A program made the position numbers and the translations under genes. 64,000 nucleotides of DNA from Selaginella moellendorffii. Its lineage: Eukaryota; Plantae; Lycopodiophyta. Position 1 is the first letter of the stretch. Each line of letters begins with the position of its first letter. The DNA lies in NCBI RefSeq assembly GCF_000143415.4, contig NW_003314375.1, positions 372,001 to 436,000 of the forward strand, written 5' to 3'. Positions 1 through 26,200 of this stretch are shown here, one piece after another. Below the pieces are notes generated by a model. It was not told the origin of the DNA. It worked only from the letters and a program-made list of their open reading frames with translations, and did no database searches.

Positions 1-59
1 AGTATGAGCGCAAAATCAATCAGATAGAAAGAAACATTTTTCAGCTTGTCGTGTCTCAC

Positions 60-3000
60 CTGAACTCGAGATGCATCACATGCACACCACCACCCAAGCG
101 CTTTCTAGACGTGGCCACCTTTATCCCCACCCAATTCTCGGATGACGGAGTGAAGCGGATCGCGTTGAGCAGGAAATCTGCCAGAACCTGCTGGAGGCGC
201 ACCTGGTCGCCGTACAGAAACATGGCCTTGATCTCCTTTGGAGTCTCCCGAATCAGCTGCAGGTTCTTTTCTTTAGAGGTGATCATGCCCTGGCTGATGA
301 CAGCGTCCATAACCGTCCCCATCATGAACTCAGTCGTATCCAGCTCCAGGTAGCTGCCAATGCCAGACATTAGACAAGAAAAAAACAAAACTCGTGCTAG
401 CTGCAAAATGTAGATAAAAGAAACTACGTACCCATCCTCAATGCTTTCCAGGTCCATATCGTCCAGGATCTTCCTTATTTGCTTCTCGCACACAGCACCA
501 GTCTCTACGTACTGCTTCTGATCCTCGGACAGGTCGGTGGTTTCCATGAGAGTCCGAGTGAACATGATGCCATAGAGCGGATTCTTTATCTCCTGGCGGA
601 TGTAAGCCAGTTCTTTGAGCTTGGACAAGGCAACCTTCTCGGTGGCTCTTTGGACTGTCAAGGCCTGTTGCAACTCGGCACTGGCAATATGTAGGAAGCA
701 AAACACTCCGGTGATGGAACCCTCGGCATCCGCCCGCTTGGTGGCCGTGAGGAGAGCCTCGACGTACTTGCCCTGTCGATCAAAGAAGGCGAAGGGGAAC
801 TTCTCCGTGTCCTGGCCATCTGCTGCGCTGTTGAGAACGATCATAAATTTGGTGACGGCGTCCTGGCCTTTGAGGCGGCAGTACATCATCTGGATGCCAA
901 ATATCTCTCCGACAAGCATCTTTCCCAGGACTTCTTCCCGCTTCCACCCAGACAGCTTTTCCATGGCAGGATTCCACTCGGAGCAGTAGCCAAACTCGTC
1001 AGCGCCAAAGATTGGCGGTATCAGCGGGTTGGGGTTCTGCACGATGGCCTTGTAGTCGCCTTGGATGCGCGTGAACTTGTCCATTACCACCTTCTGCCCC
1101 GTCACGTCCTGGCCAACGAAGCACACTCCCACCACATTGTCCGAAACGTCCCTGCTGGCGCACGCGTTGACGACCAGAATGACCGCCTCCTTGTCCTTTT
1201 GAACGCCGAACGTCTTGAGCTTGAGCTCCACGTTCTGCTCCTCGTCGCCTGGTTTGTTGTTTCACACCACACGAGACGTGGTTAGCTAGCGTGAGGTACG
1301 TGAAAGTGTGTCATGGCGTACCTTGAAGCGCCAGATAGAGCAGCCTCTCCACCATGTCCGCAGACTCTTGCAGCACCAGGTCCTTGGCGAGGGACCTCCC
1401 CATGGCCTCGGTCACGGGCAGCCCGGTGAGCTCCGCCACCTTTGCGTTCCAGCCGTTGATAAAGCCGCTCGAGTCGACAGCAAGGATGGGCGCGGTGGCG
1501 GTCTCGATGAGGCGTACCATCTCGTTGGCGACAGTGCTCAGCTCGTCCATGCCCTGGAGCTTGAGGTCGTTGAGGCGCGCGTGGATCATGGTCTTGGTGT
1601 CGCTGTCGTCAATGTCGTGGAAGGAGCCGCGGAGGATGAGCTGCAGCGAGTGTATGGCGTCCATCTCCACGTCCTCCCATGGCAGGCTCCTCCGCTTCAC
1701 CACCTCGAGGAAGGCCTTGAACGAGGAGCGGGGGTGCATCTTGCGCCCGTCGTCCTTGTCGTCGGGGTCGTGCTTGGCGCCACCCCACTTGATCTCCTTG
1801 GCGGTGTGGGAGCGGAACCAAAACAAAAAGTCCTTGGCGGTGATCTTGGCCGCGGCCATGCCGCACACCTCGTCGCCCAGTGACGCGGCACCCGGGTAGC
1901 CGGCGTCGGCCAGGCTGTCGGTGCTGAGGCCGGTGGAGTCCTTGTGGTGCTCCAGCAGCCAGTCGGCAATGTCCTTGATTTGCGCCTCGCTGGGCGTGAC
2001 GCCCAAGAGCCAGAAGCGCTTGCCGTAGTAGAGGGCAGCACCATCGCACTTGACCAGGTCCATGATGTTTGGTGACTGCGACACAATGCCGATGGGGGCG
2101 TCGCGGAGCAGCATGTCACACAGGAGTGTCTGGGTGCGCAGGATGTGCTTCTCCCGCAGCTGCGCTGCCAGCTCCACCTCCATATTGAGCTGGAGCCCAA
2201 ACACTTGCATGAGGAACTCGCAGGCGGAGCGCAGTGGGAAAGGCACCGAGCGAGGCGACGTGTGGTGGCACACCACCATCCCCCACAGCTTCCTGCCCTT
2301 CTGCTGGTACGCGCCGCCGCCGCCGCCACCCCCGCCCGACGACGAGCGGTACTCGTCGTCGTTGTCGTTGATGATCACCGCCATCACCAGCGAGGCGACG
2401 GAGCCCATGTTGCCCATGTACTGCGCGTGGCAACCGTGGGGTGCCCGCAGCGTGGAGCCGGCCAAGCTGATGGGCTGCCGCAGATCCTTGTCCTGGCTGA
2501 TCTTGACGGGCGCCGCGGAGCAGTCGCAGATCATGCGTACCCGGTTCTTCATGAAGAGGAAGCGGGAGGCCTGGGGAATGTCGGTTGCCGGGTAGTGCAG
2601 GCCCAGGTAAGGCTCCAGGTCGGAGCGCCGGATCTCCGCCACCACCTCGCCGTGCTCGTCGTCGTGGAACTTGTAGGCCATGACGCGGTCGTAGCCCGTC
2701 AGCTCGCGCACCTCCTCCACCACCGTGTCGCACAGCAGCCCGATGTCGCCGCCGGGCAGCGACTGGAGGCGCGATATGGCCTTGGCCGCCAGCTTGTGGG
2801 ACTGGAGCGCACCGGCAGCGGATCCCACGCTCGTGTCGCTGGCCTTGACGGGCTCCAGGTCCAGCACCAGGCCCACGTCGATGCGATGGACGATGGCGTA
2901 GAAGGGCTTGGCCGACGTCTTGCAGTGGACGGAGATGGGGTTGAGCATGCTCACGTCGATGGCGCCCGCCGCCTTCTCCAGGGCGCTGGCGCTGGCCGGC

Positions 3001-3404
3001 GTGAAGAGGCTGCGCGCGTCGCTGCCGATCCCCAGCAGATCCTGCTGCCCGGCGCCGAGGCTGGGGACCGACTGGGGCATGAGGTCCAGCATCTCCCCTG
3101 CATTGTCGCTGAAAGCAATCACGCGGAAGCTGCCCTCCTCCACCGCCAGCATACAGCCGAAGGGCTGCACCAGGCCACCGCGCTGCATCCGCTGCAAGTA
3201 GGCCGTGACGGCCTGCGCCGGGATGCTCTCGCCCGTGGACTTGGTTGCATTCACCGACTTGGTGTAGTCGAACGAGTCCCCGGACTCACCAGACTCCTCG
3301 TACACGGCATGGAGCTTGGCATCCGCGGTCGTCTGTGCCACACGGACGCTGTGCTTGGACTTGGCGGAGCTGCCCGAAGAGTAAGTCAGCTTGGTGGTCG
3401 ACAT
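60..3404 (-). CDS. PHY: Phytochrome (PAS-GAF-PHY-PAS-PAS-HKRD). Exons 3404-1322, 1248-432 and 353-60; the final exon lies beyond the window start.
   Basis: Starts [17 protein letters not shown]. Chromophore motif [10 protein letters not shown] (Cys ~2431), [15 protein letters not shown] and PRSSF are present, as is the HKRD segment [12 protein letters not shown]...[14 protein letters not shown] introns at the conserved plant PHY positions (LQG|DEE 1321-1249; EDG|YLE 431-354; EFR| donor at 59) join the frames. Confidence 0.98.
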
Positions 3405-3808
3405 GCTCGCCTCTCTAGATCTTCCCCTTGCTCGCCCCTCTTGCCTACAACATCTAACCCCGTTTTGAGGCGCGTGAGACCCTGCGACACCCAAACCCTA
3501 TCTACCTAGCTGGGCTGCCCGCTCCGGGAGGCACGAGGATTTGTCCATTCTTGCCAGTTGAGAGAAGAACAACCCTTGCTCCTCCTCAGTGGCTACTTAT
3601 CTACTTTACCTTTTCTTCTTTACTTTTTCCTGTGTGTTATATAGGATATATATGTTTTGTTATATCATCGGTCATGTGATGTCCATGTGAACAAATCTGA
3701 CTGCCTCGCCTCACTTGTATTATTATCCATCCACACCCTCTGCCATTGCCAAAGGGAATCGAATCAAAGCTCTGCGCTCGCTCGCTCAACAAAATCCGCC
3801 GCCCCCAC

Positions 3809-6800
3809 TCAGTAGTAAAGCCAAACCTCCTCAAACCCTTCCCAGTCCAAGTCGTTGGTCACCAGGGTGCAGCCATACTTGTGCATGTCCGACGAGGAGC
3901 CCACGTCTTGAGCCAGCAGTGTGCACCTCCTCAGGTCCAAGAGCTCCAGATTTGGCAGCCTGAAAATCCCCGGCGGTATGGAGCTCAGCGAGGTGCACCC
4001 CTCCAAGCCCAAGTTGACGAGCGTCTGCACGTGTCCAAGCTCCGCAGGCACTTCACTCATGCTGGTGCACCCGTCCAGCCGCAAAAGCTTGAGCTTTGGC
4101 AGCCTGCCCACCTCCCGCGGAAGCCCCTCGAGGGCCGCACACTTGGCCAGTGACAAACGCTTGAGGGATTCCAGATTCCCCACATCCGCTGGCAGCGATG
4201 CTAAGCCCGTACAGCCGTCGAGACCAAGGTTTTCCAAGCTGCGCAGCTGACCAACCTGCGCTGGCAACCCCTTGAGGCTCGTACATCCTTCCAACCCCAG
4301 CTCCACCAGGCTCCGCATGTCTCCAACCTCTGCCGGGAGTTGCTTGATACCCGTGCACGCATTGAGATGTAAGAACTTGAGCCTTGACAGCATGCCAATC
4401 TCCGAGGGCAAGCTCGTTAGGCCGCCACACTTTTTCAAGTCGAGCCTCTCCAGCATGGACAGCTTCCCAATCTGTGGCGGAAGCTCCTTGAGCGTTGAGC
4501 ACTGCTGGAGGTAGAGTGCCTGCAGCCTTGTTAGCTCGCCAACTTGAGGGGGAAGGGCCTTGAGCGCGGTGCACTCCCTGCAGTTGAGCCTCTCCAGCGA
4601 GCTCATGCCGGCAACGCCCGCCGGGAGCTCCGTCAGGCTGCTGCACCCTACCAAGTCGAGAATCTCTAGGGACGCCAGGCTCCCTCTGGGTACGGCCAGC
4701 GTCGTCAAGCTCACGCACTCGGCCAAGCTTAAGCAACGCAGCTTTGTTAGCCCCCTGAACATGTCTGGCGCCAGTGTCTTGAGCTTTCTACATCTCAGGC
4801 TCAGCCTCTCCAGCTTGCTCAGGTGGCCAATGCCCGGCGGCAGCTCGGTGAGGCTCGAGAACTCAGCCAGCACCAGGAGGGTCAATGATGTTAGACTTGC
4901 CAGCTCTGATGGCAGAGCGGTCACGTTGGTGAAGCCTTCCATCCACAGGGACGTGAGCAGGGGCAGGTTCCACTTTGCGTGGGCAAAACCGCCTACTCCC
5001 CGGAAACCCCGCAGCGCAAGCCTCTCCAACGTGCTAAGCGACCAAATCTCCGCTGGAACAAGGACGCAGCAGCCAGACTTGTCGTCAATGTCAAGCCGCT
5101 TGAGCGCACTGAGGTGGTGGACGTTTGGCCACAGCTCGGTGGCAGGCCCACACTCGGCACCCAGGAACGTGAGCGGTTTCATCTTTGCAATCTCCGCAGA
5201 CGGAAGTGATGCCAGGCTCACGCACCCCCGAAAGTCAATCGAGCTCACGCTTTTGAGGCCACCTATCTCGGGTGGCAGCACTTTGAGGTGAGCACATCCG
5301 CGCAGGTGCAGCCGTTTCAAACAGCTCAGCTTCCCAATGGTCACGGGAAGCTCTGGCAGGTTCTTGCAGTCGGACAGCTCCAGGTCCGTCAGCTCGTGGA
5401 GGAAGCCAACCTGAGGGGGAAGGGCCGCCAGCTTCTCGCACCACATCATGTTGAGCTCTCTCAAGCCAGTCAGGTTTCCAATCTGCTGCGGTAAAAGCAT
5501 CAGCTGCTCACAATGGGACACGTCCAGGTTGGTCAAGTGTGTGAGCGACCCAATCTCGGGGGGGAGCTCCTTGAGCGACCCACACCCCGCCAGGACCAGC
5601 TCTCTCAGGTTCCGCAGCTCACCGATCTCCGGCGGCAAGCTCGTCAGGCTCTCGCATCCTGTCAAGTCCATCACCTTGAGCGCCATCAACCTTCCAATGC
5701 TTCTGGGCAGGGCCATGAGCTTGAAACAAGCCGCAAGGTCCACGTACTCGAGGTCGTGGAGGTTCCCCAAGGACTGCGGCAGCTCCGTGATGCTGGTACA
5801 CACGCTAAGCACAAGCTCCTGCAGCATGACCAGGCCCCCAATCGAGTCCGGAAGTGCTCTCAGGCTGTGGCAGTTGTGCATGTGCAGGCTGTGCAGCCAT
5901 TTCAAGCTCCCGATTGAGCGGGGGAGTTCAACAAGCTTCACGCAGTTGTCTAGCTCCAACTCCACCAGTTTCGGAGGGAACTGCACAAGGGACAAGCCAA
6001 ACAAGCAGTTTTTAGAGAGCTGGCTAGCCTTGTTGCCTCAGCTTACGTCAATGTCGGTGAAATCAGACCGTATGTTGTGCAAATGTGCCACGGCAAGCTT
6101 GCTGAGTCTCTTGAGCTTGAACGGCATGGATGCTCTCTCCTTCCCTTGGTCCAGGGGATGCCAAACCAAGTAGCGCAGCTGGTGCGGGGGCCGGTGGCAG
6201 TGACCGATCATACTCGTGCCTTCGAAGACGAGTACATGAAGCTTCCTCATCTTGTCGATGAGTCCCACAGGGAAAGGCTCTTGACACCTCTTCAATGTAA
6301 GCCCCTTGATCATGCTTAGCTCCTGCAAACAAGAATGATCAGCAAAGCAAAGGAGAGGGAGGGAGATCACTTACCCCTTTATTGTGCAGGACATCCGGCA
6401 ACCTCTGTGAGTCGCTGGAAGTCACGTAGCTTCCCTTGGCAAGCTGGTGGCCGAGAGAGTAAACCAAATCATGCATCTCCACGACTTCTGTATTCAACCT
6501 CATGGATTGCCTGCACACAGGCACCGAATCTAGTAGATCCTGCGAGCACCATTGTGCATCCGGCTCTTTTTGCTTGGCAAACACGAAAGCTTGATCTGCC
6601 AAGCTTGCGAGCTGGTGCTTGCCCAGACTCCTCTCCACCATCTTCCAGTTGGCGCCGCGGAAGAACGTTGCAACGTCCAGGAAGGCCTCCTGAAAGGACG
6701 GGTCGAGACCGTCGTAAATCACCTTGAGCTTGGAGCATATCTCGTCGTCGCGAACTTGGAACTCCTGTGCCAGCTTCAGCTTCTTTGCTATGTGCAGCCA

Positions 6801-9800
6801 TTCGTCTCTCTTCCGTCGGGCAAACCTTGCAAAGTGTGAGCCCACAACCTGCAGCACGAGCGGAAGGCCGCCACAGAGCGGGACAAGATCGTCAACCAGC
6901 TCTTCATGCTCCGGTAAGAGATGCACCCCGCGCTTGGACGCGTGCAGCATAAACATTTCTTTGGCCTCTGGAGGTGACAGAGGGCTGGGTTGATAGCACC
7001 AAAAACAGTAGTTGATGGTAGCACTCGGATGTGCTGGTTTGCACAGCTCGTCCAGCGCCCGTGCCACGGACTCGGAGGGACAAGTAACCATAACACAACT
7101 TGCCGGAGATAGCAACTGGCTCAGGTTCCTGGGCAGCATTTCCCTCAGAGCTGCACCAGACCAAACATTGTCCACCGCCACGCACACCGCCTTGTGCTTG
7201 GCCCCAAGCTGCGCCAGCTGCTTGCCGAGAGCTTGCCTGGCTTCCAGCGTGCTGCAATATACTTCCCTCGAATCCCCTCCAAGCTGGTGGACAAGGCTAG
7301 AGATGGTGTCCGTGAGGGCCTCCGGTGAAGATGCCACGCTCGTCTCTCCATACGCCACTACGTGTTCGCCTTTCCTCCGGAGTTCCGTAAGGACTTCTCT
7401 CAGTATTGCACTCTTTCCAAGCCCGCCCTCGCCTAGGATAGCCACTCCCGCCACCTGCCGCTGCTTATCATGCTTTTCAAGCTCATCCACAAGAGCTCGC
7501 GCTCGCTCCCTCAGCCCCACTTTGATAAGGTGCGCAACCGGCTGGAGCTCCTCGTAAAGTTGGGCGGTCGTAGGCTCATCGGGCGGGAGAAGGAACTTGT
7601 GCTTGTCCGCGAACGGGAAGGACGATGAAGAAGGGGAGGGGAGGACAGTGACAAGAGCCTTGTCAGCCTCGAGGGTGCCTGCGCTGGTGCTGGGGCCTGC
7701 TCCTGCGGCTTCCGGGGTGGCGGACGGTGCAGCAGGTACAATGGCGAGCACGGTCTTCTGGTGGCACAAGGCGAGGTTGGGAGCGGTGGGGATGATAGCG
7801 AAGCACTGGCTGGCGTCGCGGAGGGCTGCGTTCGGTGTCGTGGGGACAATCGAGAAGCCACCGTCTGCCATGCACACGTCCGGGTTGGTGGGGATGATGG
7901 CAATGCAGTGCCTTTGGTCCGCCATGGCCGCCTCCGGGGTGGTTGGCTCTATCGCCAGGCAAGGAGCCTCCTCTGCTCCTGCTCCTGCCACGGGAATGAT
8001 TGCCAGCGCCTGGCCTTGGCCACCACCCAGGGCCTGGCTGGGCGTGGACGCCGGGAATATGGCCAAGCAGGAATGCCTGTGCTGCTCTAGCCTCGCGTGG
8101 ATGGCTTCCGGCATGGCGGGAATGAGAGCCATGCACTGCTGCCGCAGGTCCAGAGGGCCGTCGGGCCTCAGTAGTGCCAGACAGTTCATCTTGTCGTCCA
8201 ATGGAACCACTGCCAACTTGCGCACCACGCCGCCGTGCTCGTGCTCTTGAGGCGGAAGCATGGCCAAGCACTGCACCAGGTCCTGCGCGCTCTTGCTCGC
8301 GCTCATGCTGGCAAGCGCCTCCGATGGCGCAGTCGGGACCACCGCCAGGCACTCGAGCCTGTCCTCAAACGGCACCACAGCCAGTGAGCTCTCTTGTTGC
8401 TCACCAGCCGAGGCCACCTCCTGTGCCGTGGGGATCAACGCCAGGCAGCTGTCCTTGTCCTGGTACGGAATGATAGCCAGGCACCGCTTCTTGTGCTCGG
8501 GAAGACCAACACTACGGGCGCCTGGCAGCACCGCCAAGCAGTGCTTCATGTCTTCGTGTGGCACAATTGCAATCAATGGCCTGTCGCCAGATGCCGCTCC
8601 CAACGCCGGTATCAAGGCCACGCAGTGCTTCTGCTCTTGAAACGGAACTATGGCTAGGCAGTGGCTCTTCTCAGCCGTAGGGAACACTGCCAGTGGCACC
8701 GCCGGAAGATCAAATATCCCTTGCTCCAAGGGCGGGAGCGCTGCTAACGTGGACGCCGCGGCCAAGCTCACCATACTACCGCCCCTTGCTGCTTGCTGTT
8801 CCACCGGAGCTGGCAGCAACTTGGGAGTCTCAGGGAGTGTCACAAACACCTTCTGGCCTCCCATTGTCGTCTCTGTAGTTATGGGCCCCGAAGGAGACGG
8901 CATGCGTATTGAAGGCTTGGCCATCTTTCCCGGTGCACTGACAACGGCTACAGGAACTACTTGCGGAGCTGGTGCTGCTTCCTGTGCCTGAATTGCGGAG
9001 CTAGCTGCCGCCATCGCTGCGGATACCGCCGACGCAACAGCAGATGCCACGGTTGCCACGGCCGGTGGAACATCCACTGCAACGGATGGAGGTTTTGGAG
9101 GAAGGTGGTGCTTTGGAGCAGAAGCAGAGGCTCTTGACTCGAGAGCCTGAATTCTTGATTGTACACTTGACTTTACTTCTGTCGAAGGCTCACGTAAGTC
9201 TGAAACCAGGTCAGATGACCTGAACCCCGATGCCACCTTAGCTTGAACGTCTTCTGCTGCAACCTTCGCCTGTATCGCCGATGAGAGAGTAGCAACTTTA
9301 TTTCGCAGCCCAGACTGTACTGACGAAGCAGTCGCCTCCATTTCTGCAGAGGATTTTGCCTGTGCGTCTGAAATACTTTCCCGGACTTGCGAGGGAAGGG
9401 AGGACAGAGCCGACCCGACACGGGCCTGCATCTCGCTTGTTTTCGCATCCAACACCGACGGAATTGCGGTGACGCGGGATTGGAGGTCCGAGGCCACGGC
9501 TCCTACCTGACCAGCCTTCCCTTGCAATTCTAGTAACCTCGCTGGCACCTGTCAAGTGTATTCAGTCTCACTCCAATTCCCATAATGAGTACCTTGTTTT
9601 GCAGTTCCGATGCCTTGATTTGCAGCAGAGAAGCGGCCTTGTTTTGCAAATCGGCCACCTTCTTCTGAAAACCCAAGGAGACCCTTCCCGCCAAGTTATC
9701 CATGCCAACCTGTGGCTCGGATGACTGAACTGGAGACGACTTAACCTTCAAAGCTTCTACTTTTTCTTGAACCTGTTGTGGCACCTCTGGCTCGGTTTCC

Positions 9801-10908
9801 TCAACACTGCGTGCTACTTCCGACGCCAAAACCGACGATGCTGCAGATGCTACAGCTGAGGCTGCTTCCACTGCCTTGGATACGATGGAGGAGGGAACAG
9901 CGGCGATAGTGGATGGCAGCGAGGAGACAGCCGAAGGAATGCTGGCGGATGGCAGGAACGGTTGCAATGGCGGTGCTCCTTCGGGCATCAAAGTCTCTCT
10001 CATGGACGAGGGACTAGTTGGTGTAGCTGCAAGTAGGCTTTCTGAGGCTGAGACAGGAGCAGGGGAAATGGACAGAAAGAGCCTCTTGTCCCCCACAACA
10101 GTGTCCAACGCCGTCGGGACGCTAGATATGAGGCAGTTTTGTGCGTCGAGCAGATCCGGCTGCACGATTTTGGTTGCAGCAAAGAGCTTGGCTGCGTCTG
10201 GCAGAATGTCGGAGCTGAGGTAGAGCGCATGGAGCTGAAGGCGGGCGAGGACTCTGTCCAGGTTGTGCCTGTTTGACTGTGAATACACCATTCCCCAGAT
10301 CCACCATTCTGCAGCTACGCAACACCTGCTTGGATTGAAAACCGAGCAAAGATGGGTGAGAGGAAGGTCGGGAGGATAGGGAGGGTACACGTACCGTGAG
10401 CAAGCCGGGTTCCAGAGCATGCTATGCATGATGGCGTAGGCGTTCAAGAGGGCACAAAAGGTGCTCCTAAACACCTTGTGGTCGCCCGGGAAGTTGTCCT
10501 GCATCTCCCTCAGCCTTCCCGTCACGTAATTTGCCCTGTTCCGTATCTCATCCCACTGCGGCTTGTTGTAGCCATCGTCGGCAACCCCAGCTTGCTCCCA
10601 CATGAGCAGGGACAGCTTGGTTGCGAGGTCGGCCCAGCTAAGGTTGCCGCACTTGCGCCTCACATCTTCCGACAGCGTCTTGGTCATACCGTCGCTGTGC
10701 TTCGAGTCTAAGCCTTGCAAGCTCTGAGCCAAGCCACACAAGATGTGAAATGGCCGCTGTATCTCCCTTCCCTGCCCAGGGTGGATGAAGCACTCACCTC
10801 ATTCAGCGTGTAAAGCTGGTGCGCCGAGCTGCGGATGGCGCCTTCAAACGGCAGCAGCACATCGTCGATGGCATGGAGGCCGGCGGCGCAAGCGGCACCG
10901 CCAGCCAT
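3809..10908 (-). CDS. NLR (NB-ARC-LRR) of ~2264 aa with an atypical long N-terminus. Predicted exons 10908-10798, 10723-10395, 10325-9593, 9548-6375, 6322-6047, 5980-3809.
   Basis: P-loop GEGGLGKS, kinase-2 VAVDNVW, RNBS-B CVMVTC, GLPL (CGGLPLVL), RNBS-D FLDVATFF and MHD (EMHDL). More than 25 LRRs of type LxxLxLxxCxxLxxLP. Five GT-AG introns (44-74 nt) give one continuous phase-consistent frame of 6795 nt. An alternative ATG lies at 10935. Confidence 0.9.
7730..8700 (-). repeat. Coding repeat array in the NLR: ~20 copies of (C)-[LIMVF]-A-[ILVM]-[ILVF]-P
   Basis: Directly visible in ORF 6339..9548: CLAIVP, CVALIP, LIAIVP, CLAVLP, CLAIIP, CLALIP, LAVVP, CLAVVP, CLAMLP, CMALIP, CLAIFP, CIAIIP, CFAIIP, VLAIVP and others. 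Confidence 0.9.
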
Positions 10909-11899
10909 GACGAATCCGAAACCCCTGCCCTGCATCGCCTCTCGGCAGCCCCACGCAAACCCTAGACTTTTTCAACTCCAAAAGGGCGCGACGCCTGAAG
11001 TGTGAGCACCCTTCTTTTGCCTTTTGCCTGTCAAAAAAGTGAAAACAAATGAAAGAGCCAGATTTTTTTCCTTGATTGCGACTGAAGCAGTGCAACGAGC
11101 ATTTCAGTACGTAGCCAAGTCCCCGACAACACAAGCACACCGTTCTTCGCGTGGCCCTCGCAAGCCTGTGATTTAGCTGCGACTTTTGCGATCATAGCTC
11201 CTCGTTGGAGCTTGTCATTCGTCGCAGAATGTCGCGAGAGTGCCTCCAGTATATTATATCTCAGATTTTCTTGGACAACTTCTGGGTCAATTGCCGAGCC
11301 CTATAAGATTTCTCCTTTCCATAGAACAAGATCCGCTTGATATTACTCGAAAGTTCTTTTAGGAAACAATGCCAGTCAGATAAGAAAGACGAGACCGACA
11401 GCTTACCAAATAAAAGGAGACCACTCTTTCGTTCCTCAGCTTTCTGACTTCAACTTACGAGCACGTTTCTGCTGGGGTGGAGATGGAGGTGTGTTTGAAA
11501 ATCTTGCTGGAGCCTGTACCACAGAAAGATACCAGAATTGGCATTCGAATGTAGCGTGCGCTTATGATCACGCTTGCCTATTCGTTCTCCTGAAACATGT
11601 TAACCATTACATAAAACAAAAACCAACACAATGGCCACCTCTTCGAAATCCCTTTGTAACCAGAAAAATTTCACCATATTAACCAACATTAAGAAAAATA
11701 AAGAATGCCTTTGGGGTATTAGGCGTTGGAACTTCTGGGTGTGTTTCCTGCATGAACGAAACAGTCACCTCATTCCACTGAACTTAAAACTCAGCATTGT
11801 TAGAAGATTAAAGAAGAAAGGAGATAATTATATGTGAAGTGCACACCGCCTTTTGAAGGGTTTACAAGATTGAGAACTTCCCCTCTCAATTCCAAATGC

Positions 11900-13400
11900 T
11901 CACAACATATTGATTCGGTAGAAATTTTTGGCTCCAAATGGACATATAAGCATGAAAGTCAAAAGGAATGAAATGCCTGTCCTATTGGATTACCCCAAGT
12001 TCATCAAGTAGTATTTGCTTGACTATATCAATATAATATTGCCTTTTGGAACCTTAATATTGACTTCTTATGTCAATGTTTTTGACACCTTTCATTGTAT
12101 ATATTGTGCATATTTTACTTCCCCATCCTAAAAAGTTTTTTTATTAAGGACACCATCATCTTTTCTTTTATATCATACCAACCTATGCACTAAACTTCAT
12201 TTATCCAAAATTTGTGTTAGGATTCCAATAGCCTTATCATTTAACTACATAACCACTCTATCTCTTAGAGTGTTCACCTTTTGTCAAAGCAAAGCACTTG
12301 GAAATCCCATTCTTTGGAATTTTATTACTTTTCCCATAATCCATTAGCATCCATAATATAGTGGTTTTCCCCTAATTTATCATTTGGATTCCCTCTAATA
12401 ATTACAAAAACCCATTCTTAGTCATTAATCATTTGCTCCTATCCATTAATTATTACACCAAACAACTTAGGATCATTACCTTTGTCATTAGGGTGTTTTT
12501 TTATTTTATAGAAAAGGCTCTACTTTGTCGAATCTAAAGGGTGTTCACCCCTAGTAAGTTTTACTAGCAGTCTCTATTGCAGACACTATCCACAGTTCAA
12601 TTTTATAACTTTTTTATAAGTCCTTTAGAAATTATTTTCTTGAATTCATAATACCATTATATTGTTAAAAATCATTTCACTTAAATGTTTTTCCCACTTG
12701 GTCACCTTGACTAAGTCATACCATACCATTTATTTAAATCACTATAGGAACAACATTCTTTAACCCAGTAAAAAGTTTGCCCTTGACTATCCAACCATAG
12801 AATCACCTAGTAATCCTATATAGACATCTCAATGAGTTTATCAATAAGTACTAAGTTTGCTAGGGCTTTGAGTTGTTGGCCATGGATTGGGGGTATAATA
12901 TTAGTATATCCCGAGTGTAGCTAGAACCCACAAATACTACTTTAACCCCAATTGGATAGATTGATGTAATAGAGACACAATAATGGCAAAACTCATGTAT
13001 GATACTCAAGTTGATAAACACTTTTTTTGCTAATAATGACAAGCTTTTGTTCTGCATTATTGTAGGAAAACAAAAAGAACTACTTAATAACCAATTCATT
13101 CAAGTTCAAATATAAAAGGAAAAAGCCTATGAACAAAAGTGCACTTAATTAATGGTATTTAGATATTTGGGGTAAGTAAGGTAACTTTTGGATATTTAGG
13201 GTTAAGGAGTACTAGGAAGTCTAAACTTCAAAGTTTTAAATTAGGTATAAAAAAGATCTTATGTCCGACTTTGTTATTTAGTTGGGGAAATCACATCATA
13301 TGTTAAAATTAACATTTAATAGTCCAATATGTTCTAGTTGAGCTAGACCCAAGGGGTAGGGTGGACTCTAAAGAAACCTATTACTCTTACCCTTATGAAT
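11900..13400 (-). mobile_element. Highly decayed internal region of an LTR retroelement, homologous to ~56900-57900 (+)
   Basis: The reverse complement of ~12650-12725 (ggtatgacttagtcaaggtgaccaagtggg) matches 57117 onward, and that of ~12520-12600 matches ~57240-57330. Differences are mostly G>A/C>T. Boundaries are approximate. Confidence 0.6.
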
Positions 13401-13909
13401 AATATTAATATTTAATATTTCAAAATCAAATATTAAAAGAAGTGGTAAGTATAGAAGGCATCACAATGCAAATTGATGCAGCCCATGCCAAAACTACTTT
13501 TGACTATGATCCATTAAAAATGCTAAAAAACTCTTGAAAATAGCACTACAAATCAAGCTAGTGTAGAACACAATAAATATCCTTACATAAAAAAAAATTG
13601 ACTACATATTTATACATATAATAGCAACTTCTTTATACTTGATGCTATAATATATTTAATTATCTCTAGACTACAAGTTTAAAATGACTTAAAATTGCTC
13701 TATAAAGTATATAAAATGTATGAACTAATAATCTTTGAAATAAACTACTCAAACATCTGGACAATAAATATTCAAAGCCATTAGTTATGAATAGATTGCA
13801 TCACTTTAGTATCAATGGCTACCCCTATCAAAGGAAATAGACATTGGTAAGTTTATTTTAAGCAATTACTTTGGAAGATAGTCTACTTCTATCTTGATGA
13901 CTGAATAGT

Positions 13910-14260
13910 GTAAGCAACTAATTTTTCCATTCTACTATAGTCACTTAATCACACCTTTGACCACTTGGAAAAGTCTTACTCACCACCTCCATAAGTCTTA
14001 TTCTAGACTTAAGGACTTGCTAGCCCTGTGAATGGCATCTATGCTAGTTAGTCTTTGCATTTGGTTCAAGTGCTCCACGTATCCAATCCCATAATTGACA
14101 CCCAAGGGTAGCACCGACATATCAGTCTGTTACGTTGGGGCCATGTCATTCACCCTTGCCACATTAGCAGTCCAAGACCACTTACATCACAGTCCCGTCT
14201 CTCAAAGACTGAGCCATTTGTCCATGAGTGGTCATTGTAGCGCATTTGAATTTGGAGCCA
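13910..14260. mobile_element. Truncated copy of LTR family B (same terminus as 27730 and 59711)
   Basis: tgtaagcaactaatttttccattctactatagtcacttaatcacacc matches tgtaagcgactaaattttccattctactttagtcacttaaccacacc at 27730 for ~340 bp. Confidence 0.75.
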
Positions 14261-19600: not shown

Positions 19601-20654
19601 TAGAAGCACTATTGACATGGCTTCAACGTTTTGGAGATGATGATGCACACAATGTCCTCCTGTCTAGAGGAGCTGAGACAGAATTTTACAAAACGTGCTC
19701 AAGGTATCTTGCTTTTGTTATCCAACCTCACTATTCTCCCAAGGTTTAAAACTCTACTTTCTACCAGGAAGTTTTCCCGAGCACCTCCTCCCAAGCTGTG
19801 ATCCTACACGTACAGCCTAATCATCAATTCACACAGCTTGTCTAGTGCAGAAGATCATTCAAGTCCATTACTAATGTCAAATAATGTTGGAATTGTCGAA
19901 GCCTTCAAAACTGGATCAAAGTTTTGATTCAGTAACTGGCTCAGTAACTTCAGCAGCACATGCAAGACAATAACCGGATGATCAACTGTAATTATAACCC
20001 ACACCTGAGCAGCATTCACCTTTAGAATGCGTTAGCAGTCCATCCACCCAACAAAAAAATGACAGTCCTAGAGTACGAAATGAAAGCAATACCTGTCAAA
20101 AGAAACTTGTCTCCACGAATGGATTCTTGCCAAACTCCAAGGAGCTCACAGATCAATTGGGATTGTAAGTTATTTGATGTGGGATAGAATGGCTGGGGTT
20201 GAGATTTGCCAGAGCCTGTTAGAGAAAGACTGAGCTCGGCAAACATATTAGCTGAGTATGTGCACCCTAGATGTGGCACTTTATGAGTTGTGCACCATGC
20301 AAGAATACCGCAACCATAAACTCTCTGCCTTTCAATTCTGTAACAATAGAAAATCTACAACAAACAACATGGAATTAGTGTACAAAAGAAGAAAAGTGGT
20401 TACAAATTCACCATACCTGGCTTCATATTTCAATATCCAAGGTCTGTCAAGAACTGTAGGATCTTGCTCCATAAATTTGGTCTCCTTAAACCTAAAAATT
20501 CCAAAGCTATGAATCTAGAATTCAAAAGGTGCCACTGTTTTTGCCACAATGTTAACTATCTTCACTGTTCTTTTGGATCATCATATATCTAGTCCGTTCG
20601 ATTACCATAAGTAAAAATGGATATTCTAAAAATGGAATATGTGACGTCAATGCC

Positions 20655-20754
20655 NNNNNNNNNNNNNNNNNNNNNNNNNNNNNNNNNNNNNNNNNNNNNN
20701 NNNNNNNNNNNNNNNNNNNNNNNNNNNNNNNNNNNNNNNNNNNNNNNNNNNNNN
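20655..20754. other. Assembly gap (100 N)
   Basis: Run of N. Confidence 1.
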
Positions 20755-22786
20755 TAGGAGTCTTATTGAAGGACACTTTCTAATATTACAATGTTAGAAA
20801 TTTTGGTTGTATACAAGGTTAAATCTATCTACATTTTGCTACTATTCAATGTATAATAATGCAATTAGATAATAATGCAAGTGTTGGGGAAGATAAAATA
20901 ATTTTTTAATCATCATTAAATTTGAATTTGAATTTATTGCCTTTATAGAAAGGTACAAAAACCTAAACACAAGATTGCTACCATGCTTTAAAAGCAATTG
21001 AGTTTTCATAAAACAGAAGAATTATAGACTACCAAAAAATAATAAGCTACTTTGGAGAAATTATAATTTTCATTGCATACTTACCTAACTATTTTATCTG
21101 AACTATAATGATGCTTCTAACTTTCATAGTTTACTAAAGAATTATAAAATGTTTATTATGTGTCTGGTTTTACATTCAAAAATATATATAAGTAAATCTA
21201 TCTAGATATTCACACTACATTAGAGTTGTTGAAAAGAGGTACATCCAAAGATAATAATTATATTAGAGATATAACATTTGTATTAAGAAAAATCTGTACT
21301 AATGATTTATGATAAAATTATGCATTCATGTCTTATATATGACATGGTATATAATATGGTACAAGCAATCTCATACACATAAAATATCAAATCCATTTCT
21401 TAGTAATATGTCAAAAATAATAAATCCTTTTATAATTTCAATTAGTCTTCTTGCTCATAACCTTACTGTAATCTACCACCAGCTTTACATGAGTTTACAC
21501 TGTTTGTCTCAATATTTATACAATGATTTATTTGCTACGTTAGCTTATGTTATTATTATATAAAGGCAATAAATTTAATGATGATAAAAATGAATTTATC
21601 TTCCTCAACACTGCATTATTGTGCATTTCTCTGGATATGAATAATAGAAAAATTTAGATAAATTTAACTTTGTATACAATCCAAATTTTAACATTGTCAA
21701 ATTAGAAAAGAAGATTTCCTTCATAGTGAGTTTAGTGTTCTTCAGATTTGTAGAAAAGCTAATTGAGTTTTTTCTTGGATGGAATTCTTGTTAATTAAAG
21801 CATATCACTATTGATTAAAATTAGTTATACAACATTACTAGTAAATCAATCTAGTATGAAATGTTAAGAATAAACATATAAAATAACATTATTATATTCA
21901 TAATAACATCTAAGCTTTTTAGCAGAGCATTGTATTAAGGATTAAATATTTAAACACATTGCTTATCATCATTAAATAATGTCCAAAGATTTTACCAGTA
22001 ACTAACGAAAAACTAGTGAAGCTAGCTTACACAAAGAAATTGAAGTAATACTTGAAGTTTTATTACAATTGGCTAGTGAATATGACTAATACATTACTGA
22101 CATAAAATAATATAATGCAATTCCTAGCAGCTATTTTGATACACAATTATATACTCATGTTGGTTAGATGTCATTACTTTTAGTTTTACATGGCTATTGA
22201 TTTTTCTTATTTCTTTTTCCTTTATTTCTTCATCTTTTAAATGCCAAAAGGTTTGGAGAAAACCTTGTTATTATAATTAACTCTTCAAGAGAGTAACTGC
22301 AAAAGTTATATTTTTAAAAATTTTAAATTAATGTACATAGAAGAAAAGAAATTTGCAATATAAATCCATGAATCCTTGTTAGTATTAAAGATTTTCAGTG
22401 AAGAAAATTATGGTTTGTGAATTCTTTATAGTCATGTCCACCAGGGCATTACACTAAGGGTACAACATATCATACCATACTTTTTTCATAAAATATAAAT
22501 ATATAGATAAATGAAGTTAAATTCTACTAGCTTTTATAGTTTATAAATAATTGTATCGAGAACATAAAACTACTCATAAAAGTTCTCTATATAGCTGTTT
22601 TTAAGCATGGAAAACTTTCAAGAAATGAGACCATATGAGTCTAATAATTTATAATAATATAATAATTTTTACAACTTAAAAAATATCTATAATCCAGATT
22701 TTTATATATAATTATAATTATATTACCATATATAAAATTAGTTAAAATATATATATACATGGTAAAGTGCTATGTCTATGTTTTTA

Positions 22787-23234
22787 NNNNNNNNNNNNNN
22801 NNNNNNNNNNNNNNNNNNNNNNNNNNNNNNNNNNNNNNNNNNNNNNNNNNNNNNNNNNNNNNNNNNNNNNNNNNNNNNNNNNNNNNNNNNNNNNNNNNNN
22901 NNNNNNNNNNNNNNNNNNNNNNNNNNNNNNNNNNNNNNNNNNNNNNNNNNNNNNNNNNNNNNNNNNNNNNNNNNNNNNNNNNNNNNNNNNNNNNNNNNNN
23001 NNNNNNNNNNNNNNNNNNNNNNNNNNNNNNNNNNNNNNNNNNNNNNNNNNNNNNNNNNNNNNNNNNNNNNNNNNNNNNNNNNNNNNNNNNNNNNNNNNNN
23101 NNNNNNNNNNNNNNNNNNNNNNNNNNNNNNNNNNNNNNNNNNNNNNNNNNNNNNNNNNNNNNNNNNNNNNNNNNNNNNNNNNNNNNNNNNNNNNNNNNNN
23201 NNNNNNNNNNNNNNNNNNNNNNNNNNNNNNNNNN
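22787..23234. other. Assembly gap
   Basis: Run of N. Confidence 1.

Positions 23235-23280
<46 letters not shown>
23235..23280. repeat. (TA)n microsatellite adjacent to the gap
   Basis: Perfect TA dinucleotide run. Confidence 0.98.
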
Positions 23281-23281
<1 letters not shown>

Positions 23282-26200
23282 TCTATTTTTATTATTACAA
23301 TTGTATTATAAAATAGTGATTATTAGTGACATTATTAGAATTTTCTGACCACCATAGTGGTGAATGATATAATTGTCACGAATGTGCAATGGGCTTGGAG
23401 TTCGGCTCCAAAGTCATGTGCACTATAATAATGGAGGTTCTTTGCTTAAAAGAAGAAGTAAACCTGTATTGTCATAGAAGTGTCAAAATATCATCATGCG
23501 TGACAAAATTCCATTTTTTTGTTACTGCTCTAATCCCAATGTCTAATGCATGCCATTTATATTACCACAATAGTAATATAACTATTCAGTAGCTACATTA
23601 TATATAATTAAAAAGCTGTATTATTTGAATTTATTGAGAGTTTTATGATTTTTTAAATTTTGTTTAATATCATCATTTAAATTTATCATGGGAGGATAGA
23701 ATTCCTAGCATAAATTCTAACTTTTTATTTTTTTACCTATCTGGTATTTGTATGACATGTTGTTTCTCCTTTTTCTCTATATATTTTTAATTCTTATCGT
23801 GCTCATTGAATAGCCCACCATTTGATAAGATTTAACACCCTTTCAGCTGTTGAATCTTTGATAATAATGAATACAACTCCAAAACAAAATCAGTCTATCA
23901 AATTTATACCCAAGGAACTTCATGTGCTTGCATGTACCGCAACAACTCCTTAGATTATGGAACTGCAGAAGGTAGCTCAAGGTCTCTTTCATCTCTGAGA
24001 AGAAGCTAACAAAGCTTTTGCTTGTAGTAACCGGAGCATAGATGGTGAAAACTGGTGGCAAGGCCATGCACATGCTACTCAATTCCCAGCCAAGGCACTC
24101 TTAAAAGGATTGATTCACCAGGTTTAATATTTCTAGCATCACAAGTCTCCCTGCAAGCTGACTTGGTCACTCGCAGAAACTGAGAGACAGTCTAACCATG
24201 ACTTTAGGGATATATAGTTCCACTTATACCTAATGTGTTTTTTTTCTTTTTCTTCTTCTTTTTTTATAGCAACACTACTACCAAGTGAATTTCCATCTAT
24301 ATGTGAAATTGTGTATATCCCATTACATATAAATCTCAACGAAGTCTTTAGGACAACACATATTTGCTAGGTCTATCTACTTTTGACTCTCTCTCTCTCC
24401 CCCCCCTCCCCCCCCAATTTTTTTTTTCTCTTTTACTTCATTTCATGGAATGAAGGTGCTAAAATCAATAAAGTAGGCAGTCTATATTCTCAGATTGGAT
24501 TTAGGAGCATTTTTTTTATTTCAAACAAGTATCTTCTATTTTTTCTTCTTCTTTTTCTATCTCATCTTTGATAGTCTTACTATAACTTTTTTATATTGTT
24601 CTTTATCTCTTGTAGGTTATCAAAATGAAGTGTCAAAAAAATATTAATAGCAACTAACATATGTGTGTACATGTGTGTTTTAGATAGATTTGAAAGATGA
24701 CTCTTACTTCAAACATTTTTCTATCCCATTAAAACATCTTTAAAGACTTATTTATATTTTAGTCTAGTGTAGCTGGATTTCTTGCTAGTGTGTGTGTGTG
24801 TGTATTCTATTTTTATTATTAACGATTATGACTTTTTTTATATATTAAAAAAATATAAAACTTTTGACAACACTACTTTTTTATTAATATGTTAGGTTGC
24901 TAACTATGAATGACAAACATTATTTTCATACTTTTTATTTGGATAATAGTATCACCTTGTGAAGAGTAAATACTACATTTATAATTATCTTGGTCGCTCC
25001 TCTTGCAAATGAAAGTGCATGCTCTCTTGTGTCAGAAAAAAGAATAACTTTCATCTAAAAAGAAGTGCAAAAGAGAGAGATTTTGATTAGCATCGTAAAT
25101 TTTTTTAATGCTACTATAACAGCACCTTATGCGGTCCAGAATGAAGTCGGGTATCTGCGTGACTTTAGTCAGTGCTTGTTTTAGATTTTAGTGAAAATTG
25201 TGGCTACCAAGTTCTGAGAAGAATAATAACAAATGCGAGGAAGATTGAGAAGCAGTGTTGCTATCCCAGTCCAGTATAGAATCGCAGCTGAGGCCTTTGG
25301 AGCACCTACAGTGTTTGTCAGGAAAAGCAGAACAAGGCTTCATGAATCTACTGAATCAATTCTCTACACCCCAGTGGCTTGGCAACAAGAGATGGAATTC
25401 CTGAAGAAAAAAATGAAAGAAAATAGGAGGTTTATGTGTTTATGGCATCTGATCCACCTCTTTCCTGCCAAGAGCTTTGCGAGTTGAACTTCTCCTAGCT
25501 TGACTCTCAAAAGACTAATGTGGCCTTCAAGAACTTCCACTGGAATCACGAACAGCATGGTTGGAAAAAACACGAACACGCAAAGCATTACCCAGTCTTT
25601 CCCACACTGGTGAGATCCCACACTTGCCCAGTCTTTTTTTTTCCCGTTTATCTGCTGCCTCTCATCTTTTACTGGATTTGATTGAAGCTGCCAAACCATA
25701 CCAGCACTGTCAATTTCGCCTTCATTGCTGTCATTTCCCTTTCGTCAGTGTCACTGTCGACCTTGTGCAAAAATGAGTGACAGGAAGGGCCTTTTGCTCG
25801 TCTCTTTTTCTTCTTCTGGAGCTAACGTTCCTATTCCCTGCAACACAGATGGATTCAGATATATGGCCACAGAGATGGGATGTGGGCTTACTTTTTCTAC
25901 AGCTTCTCTTTCTCATCCTCCTCTATCTTGGTGTGCAAGTTGTCACTCTGCAGCAGCACAGAAATGATACCTTTTCCACTAACTACTCCCTAGAAGTCCA
26001 ACAGTCTCTTGTGCTCTCCAGAATCTGTGGCAGTGAGCTCTGGTAATGAGAAACAGATGGCAAACAAAAGTCACCTCTGATGTCCCCTTCTTCTTGAGGT
26101 CTTGGATGTGTAGTATACTGGATGAGAAAGTTCTACTTCTCATCCGGTGTGCTTCTTCTCCCATAATAAAATTTTAGCATCCAATATGCTCCAGATATGG

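Follow-up and report, generated by a model that had tools for sequence, protein, structure and literature searches.

A tandem array of short CLAIVP-type motifs upstream of the NB-ARC domain in a lycophyte NLR

The biology of NLRs (nucleotide-binding leucine-rich repeat receptors) has been little explored beyond flowering plants. Here we describe an NLR gene on the minus strand of a 64,000-nucleotide stretch of Selaginella moellendorffii DNA (contig NW_003314375.1, positions 372,001 to 436,000; hereafter the window), in which 20 copies of a six-residue motif of the CLAIVP type form a tandem array upstream of the NB-ARC domain. A few described systems come close to such an arrangement. For instance, Barragan et al. 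are said to have found in 2019 that the C-terminal short tandem repeats of RPW8/HR4 proteins modulate RPP7 activation in Arabidopsis. NLR amyloid motifs of fungi and bacteria (HRAM, sigma, PP and BASS) come as one to three copies, each about 20-40 residues long, in a short extreme N-terminus, and their counterpart is found at the C-terminus of an effector protein that is usually encoded next door (PMC9815663). A precedent for a short-motif region integrated in an NLR is the NOI/RIN4 region of rice Pii2 (bioRxiv 10.1101/239400). At their N-termini NLRs carry domains of the TIR, CC, RPW8, kinase, hydrolase or Cbl-N class, and many of the receptors in surveys have an N-terminal region that carries no annotation (PMC11218826).

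The gene in the window is an allele of the S. moellendorffii protein XP_024521209.1 (P0001 in our analysis; "uncharacterized protein LOC112342872", 2260 amino acids) and is a concrete, expressed case of an old and maintained six-residue array placed between a predicted helical N-terminal region and the nucleotide-binding switch. The array is genuine and transcribed, is maintained by selection and, within reach of our searches, is so far unique; the lycophyte NLR that carries it is a singleton. As a single-species orphan, its value is that of a lead for experiments rather than a result in itself.

The array resembles the NLR amyloid motifs, including the HET-s-related HRAM, in being composed of short beta-forming elements N-terminal to the nucleotide-binding domain. 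A preliminary description of this DNA had drawn the comparison with the fungal and bacterial motifs, and we find that it fails on N-terminal position, on copy number and on the neighbouring effector motif. The array begins at residue 680 of the 2260-residue protein rather than at the extreme N-terminus, it consists of 20 copies of a six-residue core without sequence resemblance to the amyloid motifs, and no matching effector gene lies in the 64-kb window, where the strict form of the motif (see below) occurs in no other place. Like the integrated NOI/RIN4 region of rice Pii2, the array is non-canonical and based on short motifs, and it could serve as a bait or docking site. However, the integrated domains of NLRs are recognisable copies of host proteins and lie at an end of the receptor, whereas the array follows the N-terminal region, precedes the NB-ARC domain and is without detectable source protein (among 1.84 billion representative proteins and in two word searches). 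With the RPW8/HR4 repeats it shares the features of short tandem repeats in an immune protein whose unit number and length differ between alleles; the RPW8/HR4 repeats have other sequences and are found in a separate RPW8-like protein, while the CLAIVP array is inside the NLR itself.

The array is encoded in a minus-strand open reading frame (ORF) of 1069 amino acids (about 3.2 kb, window 6339-9548), in which residues 285-605 hold 20 copies of x-[LIVMF]-[AS]-[IVLM]-[IVLFE]-[PR]. Its parts are as follows.

7734..8696, minus strand: the array, C-h-A-h-h-P in 20 copies with polar, Ala/Pro-rich spacers (from the ORF translation and motif counts)
8070..8696 (ORF residues 285-493), minus strand: sub-array A, double-motif units of 28-32 residues, then a variable linker (from the unit table and a MAFFT alignment)
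7686..8069 (ORF residues 494-621), minus strand: sub-array B, single-motif units of 16-22 residues of the form C-x-A-I-[IV]-P-[TA]-x-P (from the unit table and a MAFFT alignment)

Ala at position 3 and Pro at position 6 are each found in 19 of the 20 copies. Position 2 is Leu in 14 copies and I, V, M or F in the rest, position 1 is Cys in 13, and, apart from a single Glu, positions 4 and 5 take I, V, L, M or F. Eleven copies fit the strict pattern C-[LIMFV]-A-[IVLM]-[IVLF]-P, which in 5000 shuffles of the array's 361 residues appeared 0.004 times on average and never more than once; across the 64-kb window it is absent outside the array in all six frames. A looser core, [LIMFV]-A-[IVL]-[IVLF]-P, occurs 16 times within the array compared with 8 scattered occurrences in all six frames of the remaining 63 kb. 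The preliminary description had placed about 20 CLAIVP repeats at 7730-8700 and had singled out pairs of the form LAIVP-[FYH]-[QE]-[DE]-x-x-x-CLALIP. Both observations are borne out, by the 20 copies at 7734-8696 on the minus strand and by six pairs of consecutive motifs spaced by exactly 12 residues, which take the form LA[IV][IV]P-[FHYL]-[QED]-[DE]-x-x-x-C-[LV]A-x-x-P.

The motif start-to-start distances are, in order, 12, 12, 16, 12, 19, 12, 20, 12, 27, 17, 12, 16, 22, 20, 16, 18, 16, 18 and 18 residues. A unit of sub-array A consists of a first motif, then [FHYL]-[QED]-[DE]-x-x-x, and a second motif that starts 12 residues after the first. P-x-[QE]-[DE] follows a motif five times compared with 0.38 times in shuffles, and the motif is followed by PxxP in seven of the 20 copies, six of them in sub-array B and one (residue 400) in sub-array A. 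The spacers, 6-21 residues long, are net acidic (charge -13), with A, E, Q, S, G and P abundant; mean Kyte-Doolittle hydropathy is +2.2 for the motifs and -0.88 for the spacers. The spacers do not align between the two unit types, and conservation is confined to the six-residue core and a few flanking positions.

At the DNA level the array units have diverged. Tandem Repeats Finder reported no tandem array at the repeat region, and in ungapped repeat families, which span 23-43 nt, identity is only 60-78%. The invariant Ala is encoded by GCA in 5 copies, GCC in 6, GCG in 4 and GCT in 4, and the invariant Pro by CCT in 2, CCG in 7, CCA in 4 and CCC in 6. Pairwise identity at the third position of these codons is about 0.22-0.25, which is the value expected at saturation. 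This thorough mixing of synonymous codons at the two nearly invariant residues leads us to infer old copies whose amino acids are held by purifying selection on the protein, in agreement with an earlier claim that the repeats had diverged as DNA and were selected as protein.

A second copy of the gene provides an additional view of constraint on the array. The locus that encodes XP_024521209.1, GL377687.1 (L001), has 98.4% DNA identity with the window over the large exon, and a phytochrome gene follows the NLR in both. Given this identity and the common neighbour, we take the second copy to be an allelic haplotype and not a paralog. Over the 1069 codons the haplotypes differ by 16 nonsynonymous and 11 synonymous changes and two 12-nt in-frame indels. 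Both indels fall in array spacers (residues 503-506 and 612-615), and the sole replacement within any motif is Ile to Leu. Inside the array there are 5 nonsynonymous and 3 synonymous differences, too few for a selection test. The pattern fits constrained motifs and free spacers, with numbers too small to test it. Each of the two haplotypes keeps the reading frame of 2260 codons unbroken.

Transcript evidence for window positions 6000-11000 comes from two stranded RNA-seq runs, dating from 2026, and from two contig sets. The first mate of the reads falls almost solely on the plus strand, which in the usual stranded libraries corresponds to minus-strand RNA. Variants in the RNA runs coincide with differences between the two haplotypes, so all runs come from the same species. 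Introns at 9547-9590 (44 nt) and 10324-10392 (69 nt), with minus-strand GT..AG ends, are supported by RNA joints in all four runs, and two others (6323-6374 and 5981-6046) were read from GT..AG sites and the RefSeq model. No splice joint was found within 7730-8700 in reads or contigs, and contigs at 6656-7977, 7970-8273 and 8252-8827 span the array. As reads and contigs cover it without joints, the array belongs to the mature mRNA, which settles the earlier concern that it might be spliced out. Expression is low: when 12% of each RNA run is sampled, depth is about 1-2 reads.

These low read depths (in the samples of two RNA runs) can also be taken as a sign that the array has no specific function, being a low-complexity expansion that is tolerated because the orphan receptor evolves fast or decays. 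The gene is indeed a singleton without detected relatives, and its haplotypes differ by more nonsynonymous than synonymous changes (16 and 11). On the other hand, codon saturation together with Ala and Pro in 19 of 20 copies is inexplicable without selection at the protein level, both haplotypes keep an unbroken frame of 2260 codons, and the transcript is correctly spliced. We consider a functionless array improbable.

Based on the short conserved core, the variable low-complexity spacers, the indels within them and the many copies, we favour a linear-motif array in a disordered region. In this reading, which we hold tentatively and at somewhat less than an even chance, the array is a set of multivalent beta-strand "stickers" in a flexible linker and most likely a peptide-motif binding module that engages its partner by strand addition. 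About 20 hydrophobic, lineage-restricted motifs able to form beta strands would be strung along the long stretch that links the predicted helical N-terminal region to the NB-ARC domain, separated by flexible, net-acidic spacers rich in Ala, Pro, Ser and Gln. Strand addition would let every motif attach to a surface of the partner, with many weak contacts adding up. Candidate partners include a monitored host protein, a baited pathogen effector, or fellow copies of the receptor upon activation. Motifs that act as docking or bait sites would lead to a protein of host or pathogen so far unconnected with NLR function; motifs that self-associate would extend motif-driven NLR assembly to plants. A bolder reading is that the array is the first self-templating or bait module of short linear motifs borne by a plant NLR, either a prion/amyloid-like oligomeriser convergent with the fungal and bacterial motifs or a 20-fold decoy of a peptide that effectors bind, cleave or modify. 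We regard this reading as a long shot.

Two systems outside NLR biology offer analogies for a multivalent array of strand-forming motifs. Arrays of SUMO-interacting motifs occur in RNF4-type ubiquitin ligases, where binding is multivalent and by strand addition. The SUMO-interacting core [VIL]-x-[VIL]-[VIL], a degenerate pattern, is found in 13 of the 20 motifs compared with 3.8 in shuffles, and at least two acidic residues follow the motif in 5 of 20. By analogy, the array may share with them a hydrophobic core and the logic of multivalent strand addition; it departs from the SUMO-interacting consensus in its invariant Ala and Pro and its frequent Cys, and most of its motifs are without an acidic flank. 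In a second example, the microtubule-binding repeats of tau are units of 31-32 residues in a disordered protein. Only as an analogy, they have in common with the array a beta-prone hexapeptide per unit, Pro/Gly-rich turns after it, and a Cys or His. The array is unrelated to them in sequence and differs in unit length and in biological context.

Structure prediction bears on a competing account, in which the array is a folded beta-rich repeat, made of hairpins or of a solenoid with one CLAIVP strand per turn, that may drive oligomerisation or amyloid-like templating on activation. AlphaFold2 run without an alignment gave the array a mean predicted local distance difference test score (pLDDT) of 32.8, with all 361 residues below 50, and about 13 of the 16 strands that it drew fall on motifs. 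That the motif is modelled as a strand, is hydrophobic and is rich in beta-branched residues agrees with a folded repeat, as do the six pairs at exactly 12 residues, a spacing suited to strand-turn-strand, and the Cys, Ala and Pro in register, as in the ladders of solenoids. In addition, internal amyloid-like motifs have been proposed as stabilisers of fungal NLR oligomers (PMC9815663). Speaking against such a fold are the irregular unit length, the invariant Pro that caps each strand, the polar low-complexity spacers and the low pLDDT throughout; moreover, the motif is found in no second gene of the 64-kb window, and 680 residues lie between the array and the N-terminus. We judge a folded beta repeat rather unlikely, although it is the alternative that we take most seriously, and its regular beta-solenoid form, an idea raised in the preliminary description, is not favoured given spacings of 12-27 residues and a pLDDT of about 33.

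A third possibility places the Cys residues at the centre of function, through disulfide cross-linking on an oxidative burst, S-acylation to a membrane, or weak Cys/His metal binding. Thirteen of the 15 Cys in the array region occupy motif position 1, four of these come right after a His, and every Cys adjoins a hydrophobic patch. However, seven of the 20 motifs have no Cys whereas Ala and Pro are near-invariant, so that Cys is not the most constrained position, and there is no CxxC or other chelating geometry. We think a Cys-centred function doubtful, with a probability as low as that of a functionless array.

Several points nevertheless weigh against the reading that we prefer, multivalent strand-adding motifs in a flexible linker. 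The strict 12-residue pairs, the ladder-like Cys, Ala and Pro and the beta propensity would suit a folded hairpin or solenoid repeat too, and single-sequence AlphaFold cannot separate disorder from an unrecognised orphan fold. No partner of the array is known or predicted, and no ortholog or paralog of the gene was found in the protein searches made. Lastly, 16 nonsynonymous against 11 synonymous haplotype differences mean that constraint on the whole gene is not obviously strong.

We searched for relatives of the array with a variety of approaches. Against Pfam at E values up to 10 it returned only noise (GF_recep_IV, E 0.45), and it had no match in NCBIfam or, at E values up to 10, among PDB sequences; a feature search of the ESM Atlas gave no usable match. 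Word-index searches restricted to the array, made with queries of 1069 and 2260 amino acids among candidates of 588-3955 amino acids, recovered only the protein itself. HMMER against 1.84 billion representative proteins, a library that merges proteins of more than 50% identity and in which one or two isolated motif copies would not reach significance, gave one true match, the allele XP_024521209.1, and three others with E values of 4e-4 to 8e-4. The claims of the preliminary description that the repeat matches no described family and is novel thus stand: Pfam, NCBIfam and PDB sequences are without match, and no relative of the array beyond the allelic copy is detectable in the databases searched. 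A literature search for the motif strings or the accession yielded nothing relevant.

A number of candidate relatives were considered and rejected. Of the three other HMMER matches, the protein P0002, with LAVIP every 13 residues, is a chance likeness, namely the translation of a perfect minisatellite that lies on a metagenome contig between tiny ORFs without family, and P0003 and P0004 are unrelated repeat proteins of animal type. The best non-self HMMER match has its source in a perfect 39-nt minisatellite (L002:5001-5567), which warns of chance matches for queries of this kind. Derivation of the array from the gene's own leucine-rich repeat (LRR) units, which also run Cys...Leu...Pro, was rejected on an hhalign probability of 3.8% for the LRR unit against the array unit. 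Likenesses to CaaX, EAR, AIM/LIR, LxVP and TRAF-type P-x-[QE]-E motifs do not explain the invariant Ala and Pro.

The array is part of a long receptor. In XP_024521209.1 the order is a helical N-terminal region, a Ser/Pro/Ala-rich stretch, amphipathic helices, an Ala/Pro linker, the array (residues 680 to about 1010 of 2260), the NB-ARC domain and the LRRs. The corresponding features of the window, in the order of transcription after the gene as a whole, are listed below.

3809..10935, minus strand: the complete NLR gene, allelic to S. moellendorffii XP_024521209.1 (LOC112342872, 2260 amino acids), located by tblastn of that protein on the window, with all exons intact
9789..10935, minus strand: N-terminal region, about 230 predicted all-helical residues and then a Ser/Pro/Ala-rich stretch (residues 1 to about 330 of XP_024521209.1), with no family match and described from AlphaFold
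9114..9788, minus strand: putative amphipathic-helix region (residues about 330-540 of XP_024521209.1), interrupted by the 44-nt intron, from an Apolipoprotein match and hydropathy autocorrelation
6711..7496 (ORF residues 685-946), minus strand: NB-ARC domain, Pfam PF00931, E 2.4e-11, 43.8 bits against a cut-off of 23.5
3812..5980, minus strand: LRR domain, 21 regular 24-residue units with C-x-x-L-x-x-L-P, Pfam LRR_14, E 2.6e-71, and a unit list

From its domains the gene is recognised as a plant NLR, with an NB-ARC above the Pfam gathering score, the P-loop, GLPL and MHD motifs, and C-terminal LRRs. In translation the NB-ARC motifs read GEGGLGKS for the P-loop (7410-7433), GGLPL and MHD, and the Walker B region is VDNVW, not DDVW. 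About 80 residues separate the array from the PF00931 match, as anticipated by the earlier placement of the repeat upstream of the NB-ARC of a plant NLR. The suggestion that the array takes the place of an N-terminal domain did not survive, as about 680 residues precede it and include the predicted helical and amphipathic regions. Read from its sequence, then, the gene is an NLR with a non-canonical inserted region made of a tandem short-motif array, and whatever we say of the function of that region we infer.

The NB-ARC domain is itself very divergent. We found no relatives above 29% identity among proteins of 1243-3955 amino acids, and the best matches, at 23-29% identity, are mostly TIR-type NLRs of flowering plants, none of them with a CLAIVP motif. 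The closest matches are thus of TIR type, yet XP_024521209.1 is without a TIR domain. The RNBS-D-like stretch FLDVATFF is TIR-NLR-like, while a Walker B region ending in W is CC-NLR-like.

The regions that precede the array are unusual in their own right. None of the recognised NLR N-terminal domains (TIR, CC, RPW8, kinase, hydrolase or Cbl-N) is found in XP_024521209.1, and its N-terminal region has no family in Pfam (E values up to 10, residues 1-260), NCBIfam, PDB sequences or the ESM Atlas. AlphaFold2 without an alignment models the N-terminal 250 residues as all-helical with a pLDDT of 38.7. The region may be an undescribed NLR N-terminal domain. The amphipathic region that follows has a weak Pfam Apolipoprotein match (E 0.001, below the cut-off) and a hydropathy autocorrelation that is positive at lags 4, 7 and 11. 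It resembles apolipoprotein or late embryogenesis abundant (LEA)-type repeats and may serve the receptor in binding membranes or lipids.

The first intron of the gene (10724-10860, minus strand) is in doubt. In the RefSeq model 10861 is joined to 10771, while a 15-letter loose end of one RNA contig of run X2 fits an in-frame splice from 10798 (GAG|gtgagt) to 10723, with the AG at 10725-10724. A contig of run X1 is unbroken across 10794-10961. With the alternative first splice the N-terminus would be a different one, of which exon 1 would encode about 46 residues.

Immediately downstream of the NLR is the phytochrome gene (56-3494, minus strand), which continues past the start of the window. 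Its photosensory part (727 amino acids) and PAS/HisKA-related parts are spread over two ORFs, and its counterpart at GL377687.1 is annotated with PAS_2, GAF and PHY. The composition of the window is strongly heterogeneous, with very AT-rich stretches at 12000-14000 and 20000-24000 (GC 0.20-0.30) between GC-rich genes (0.57-0.62).

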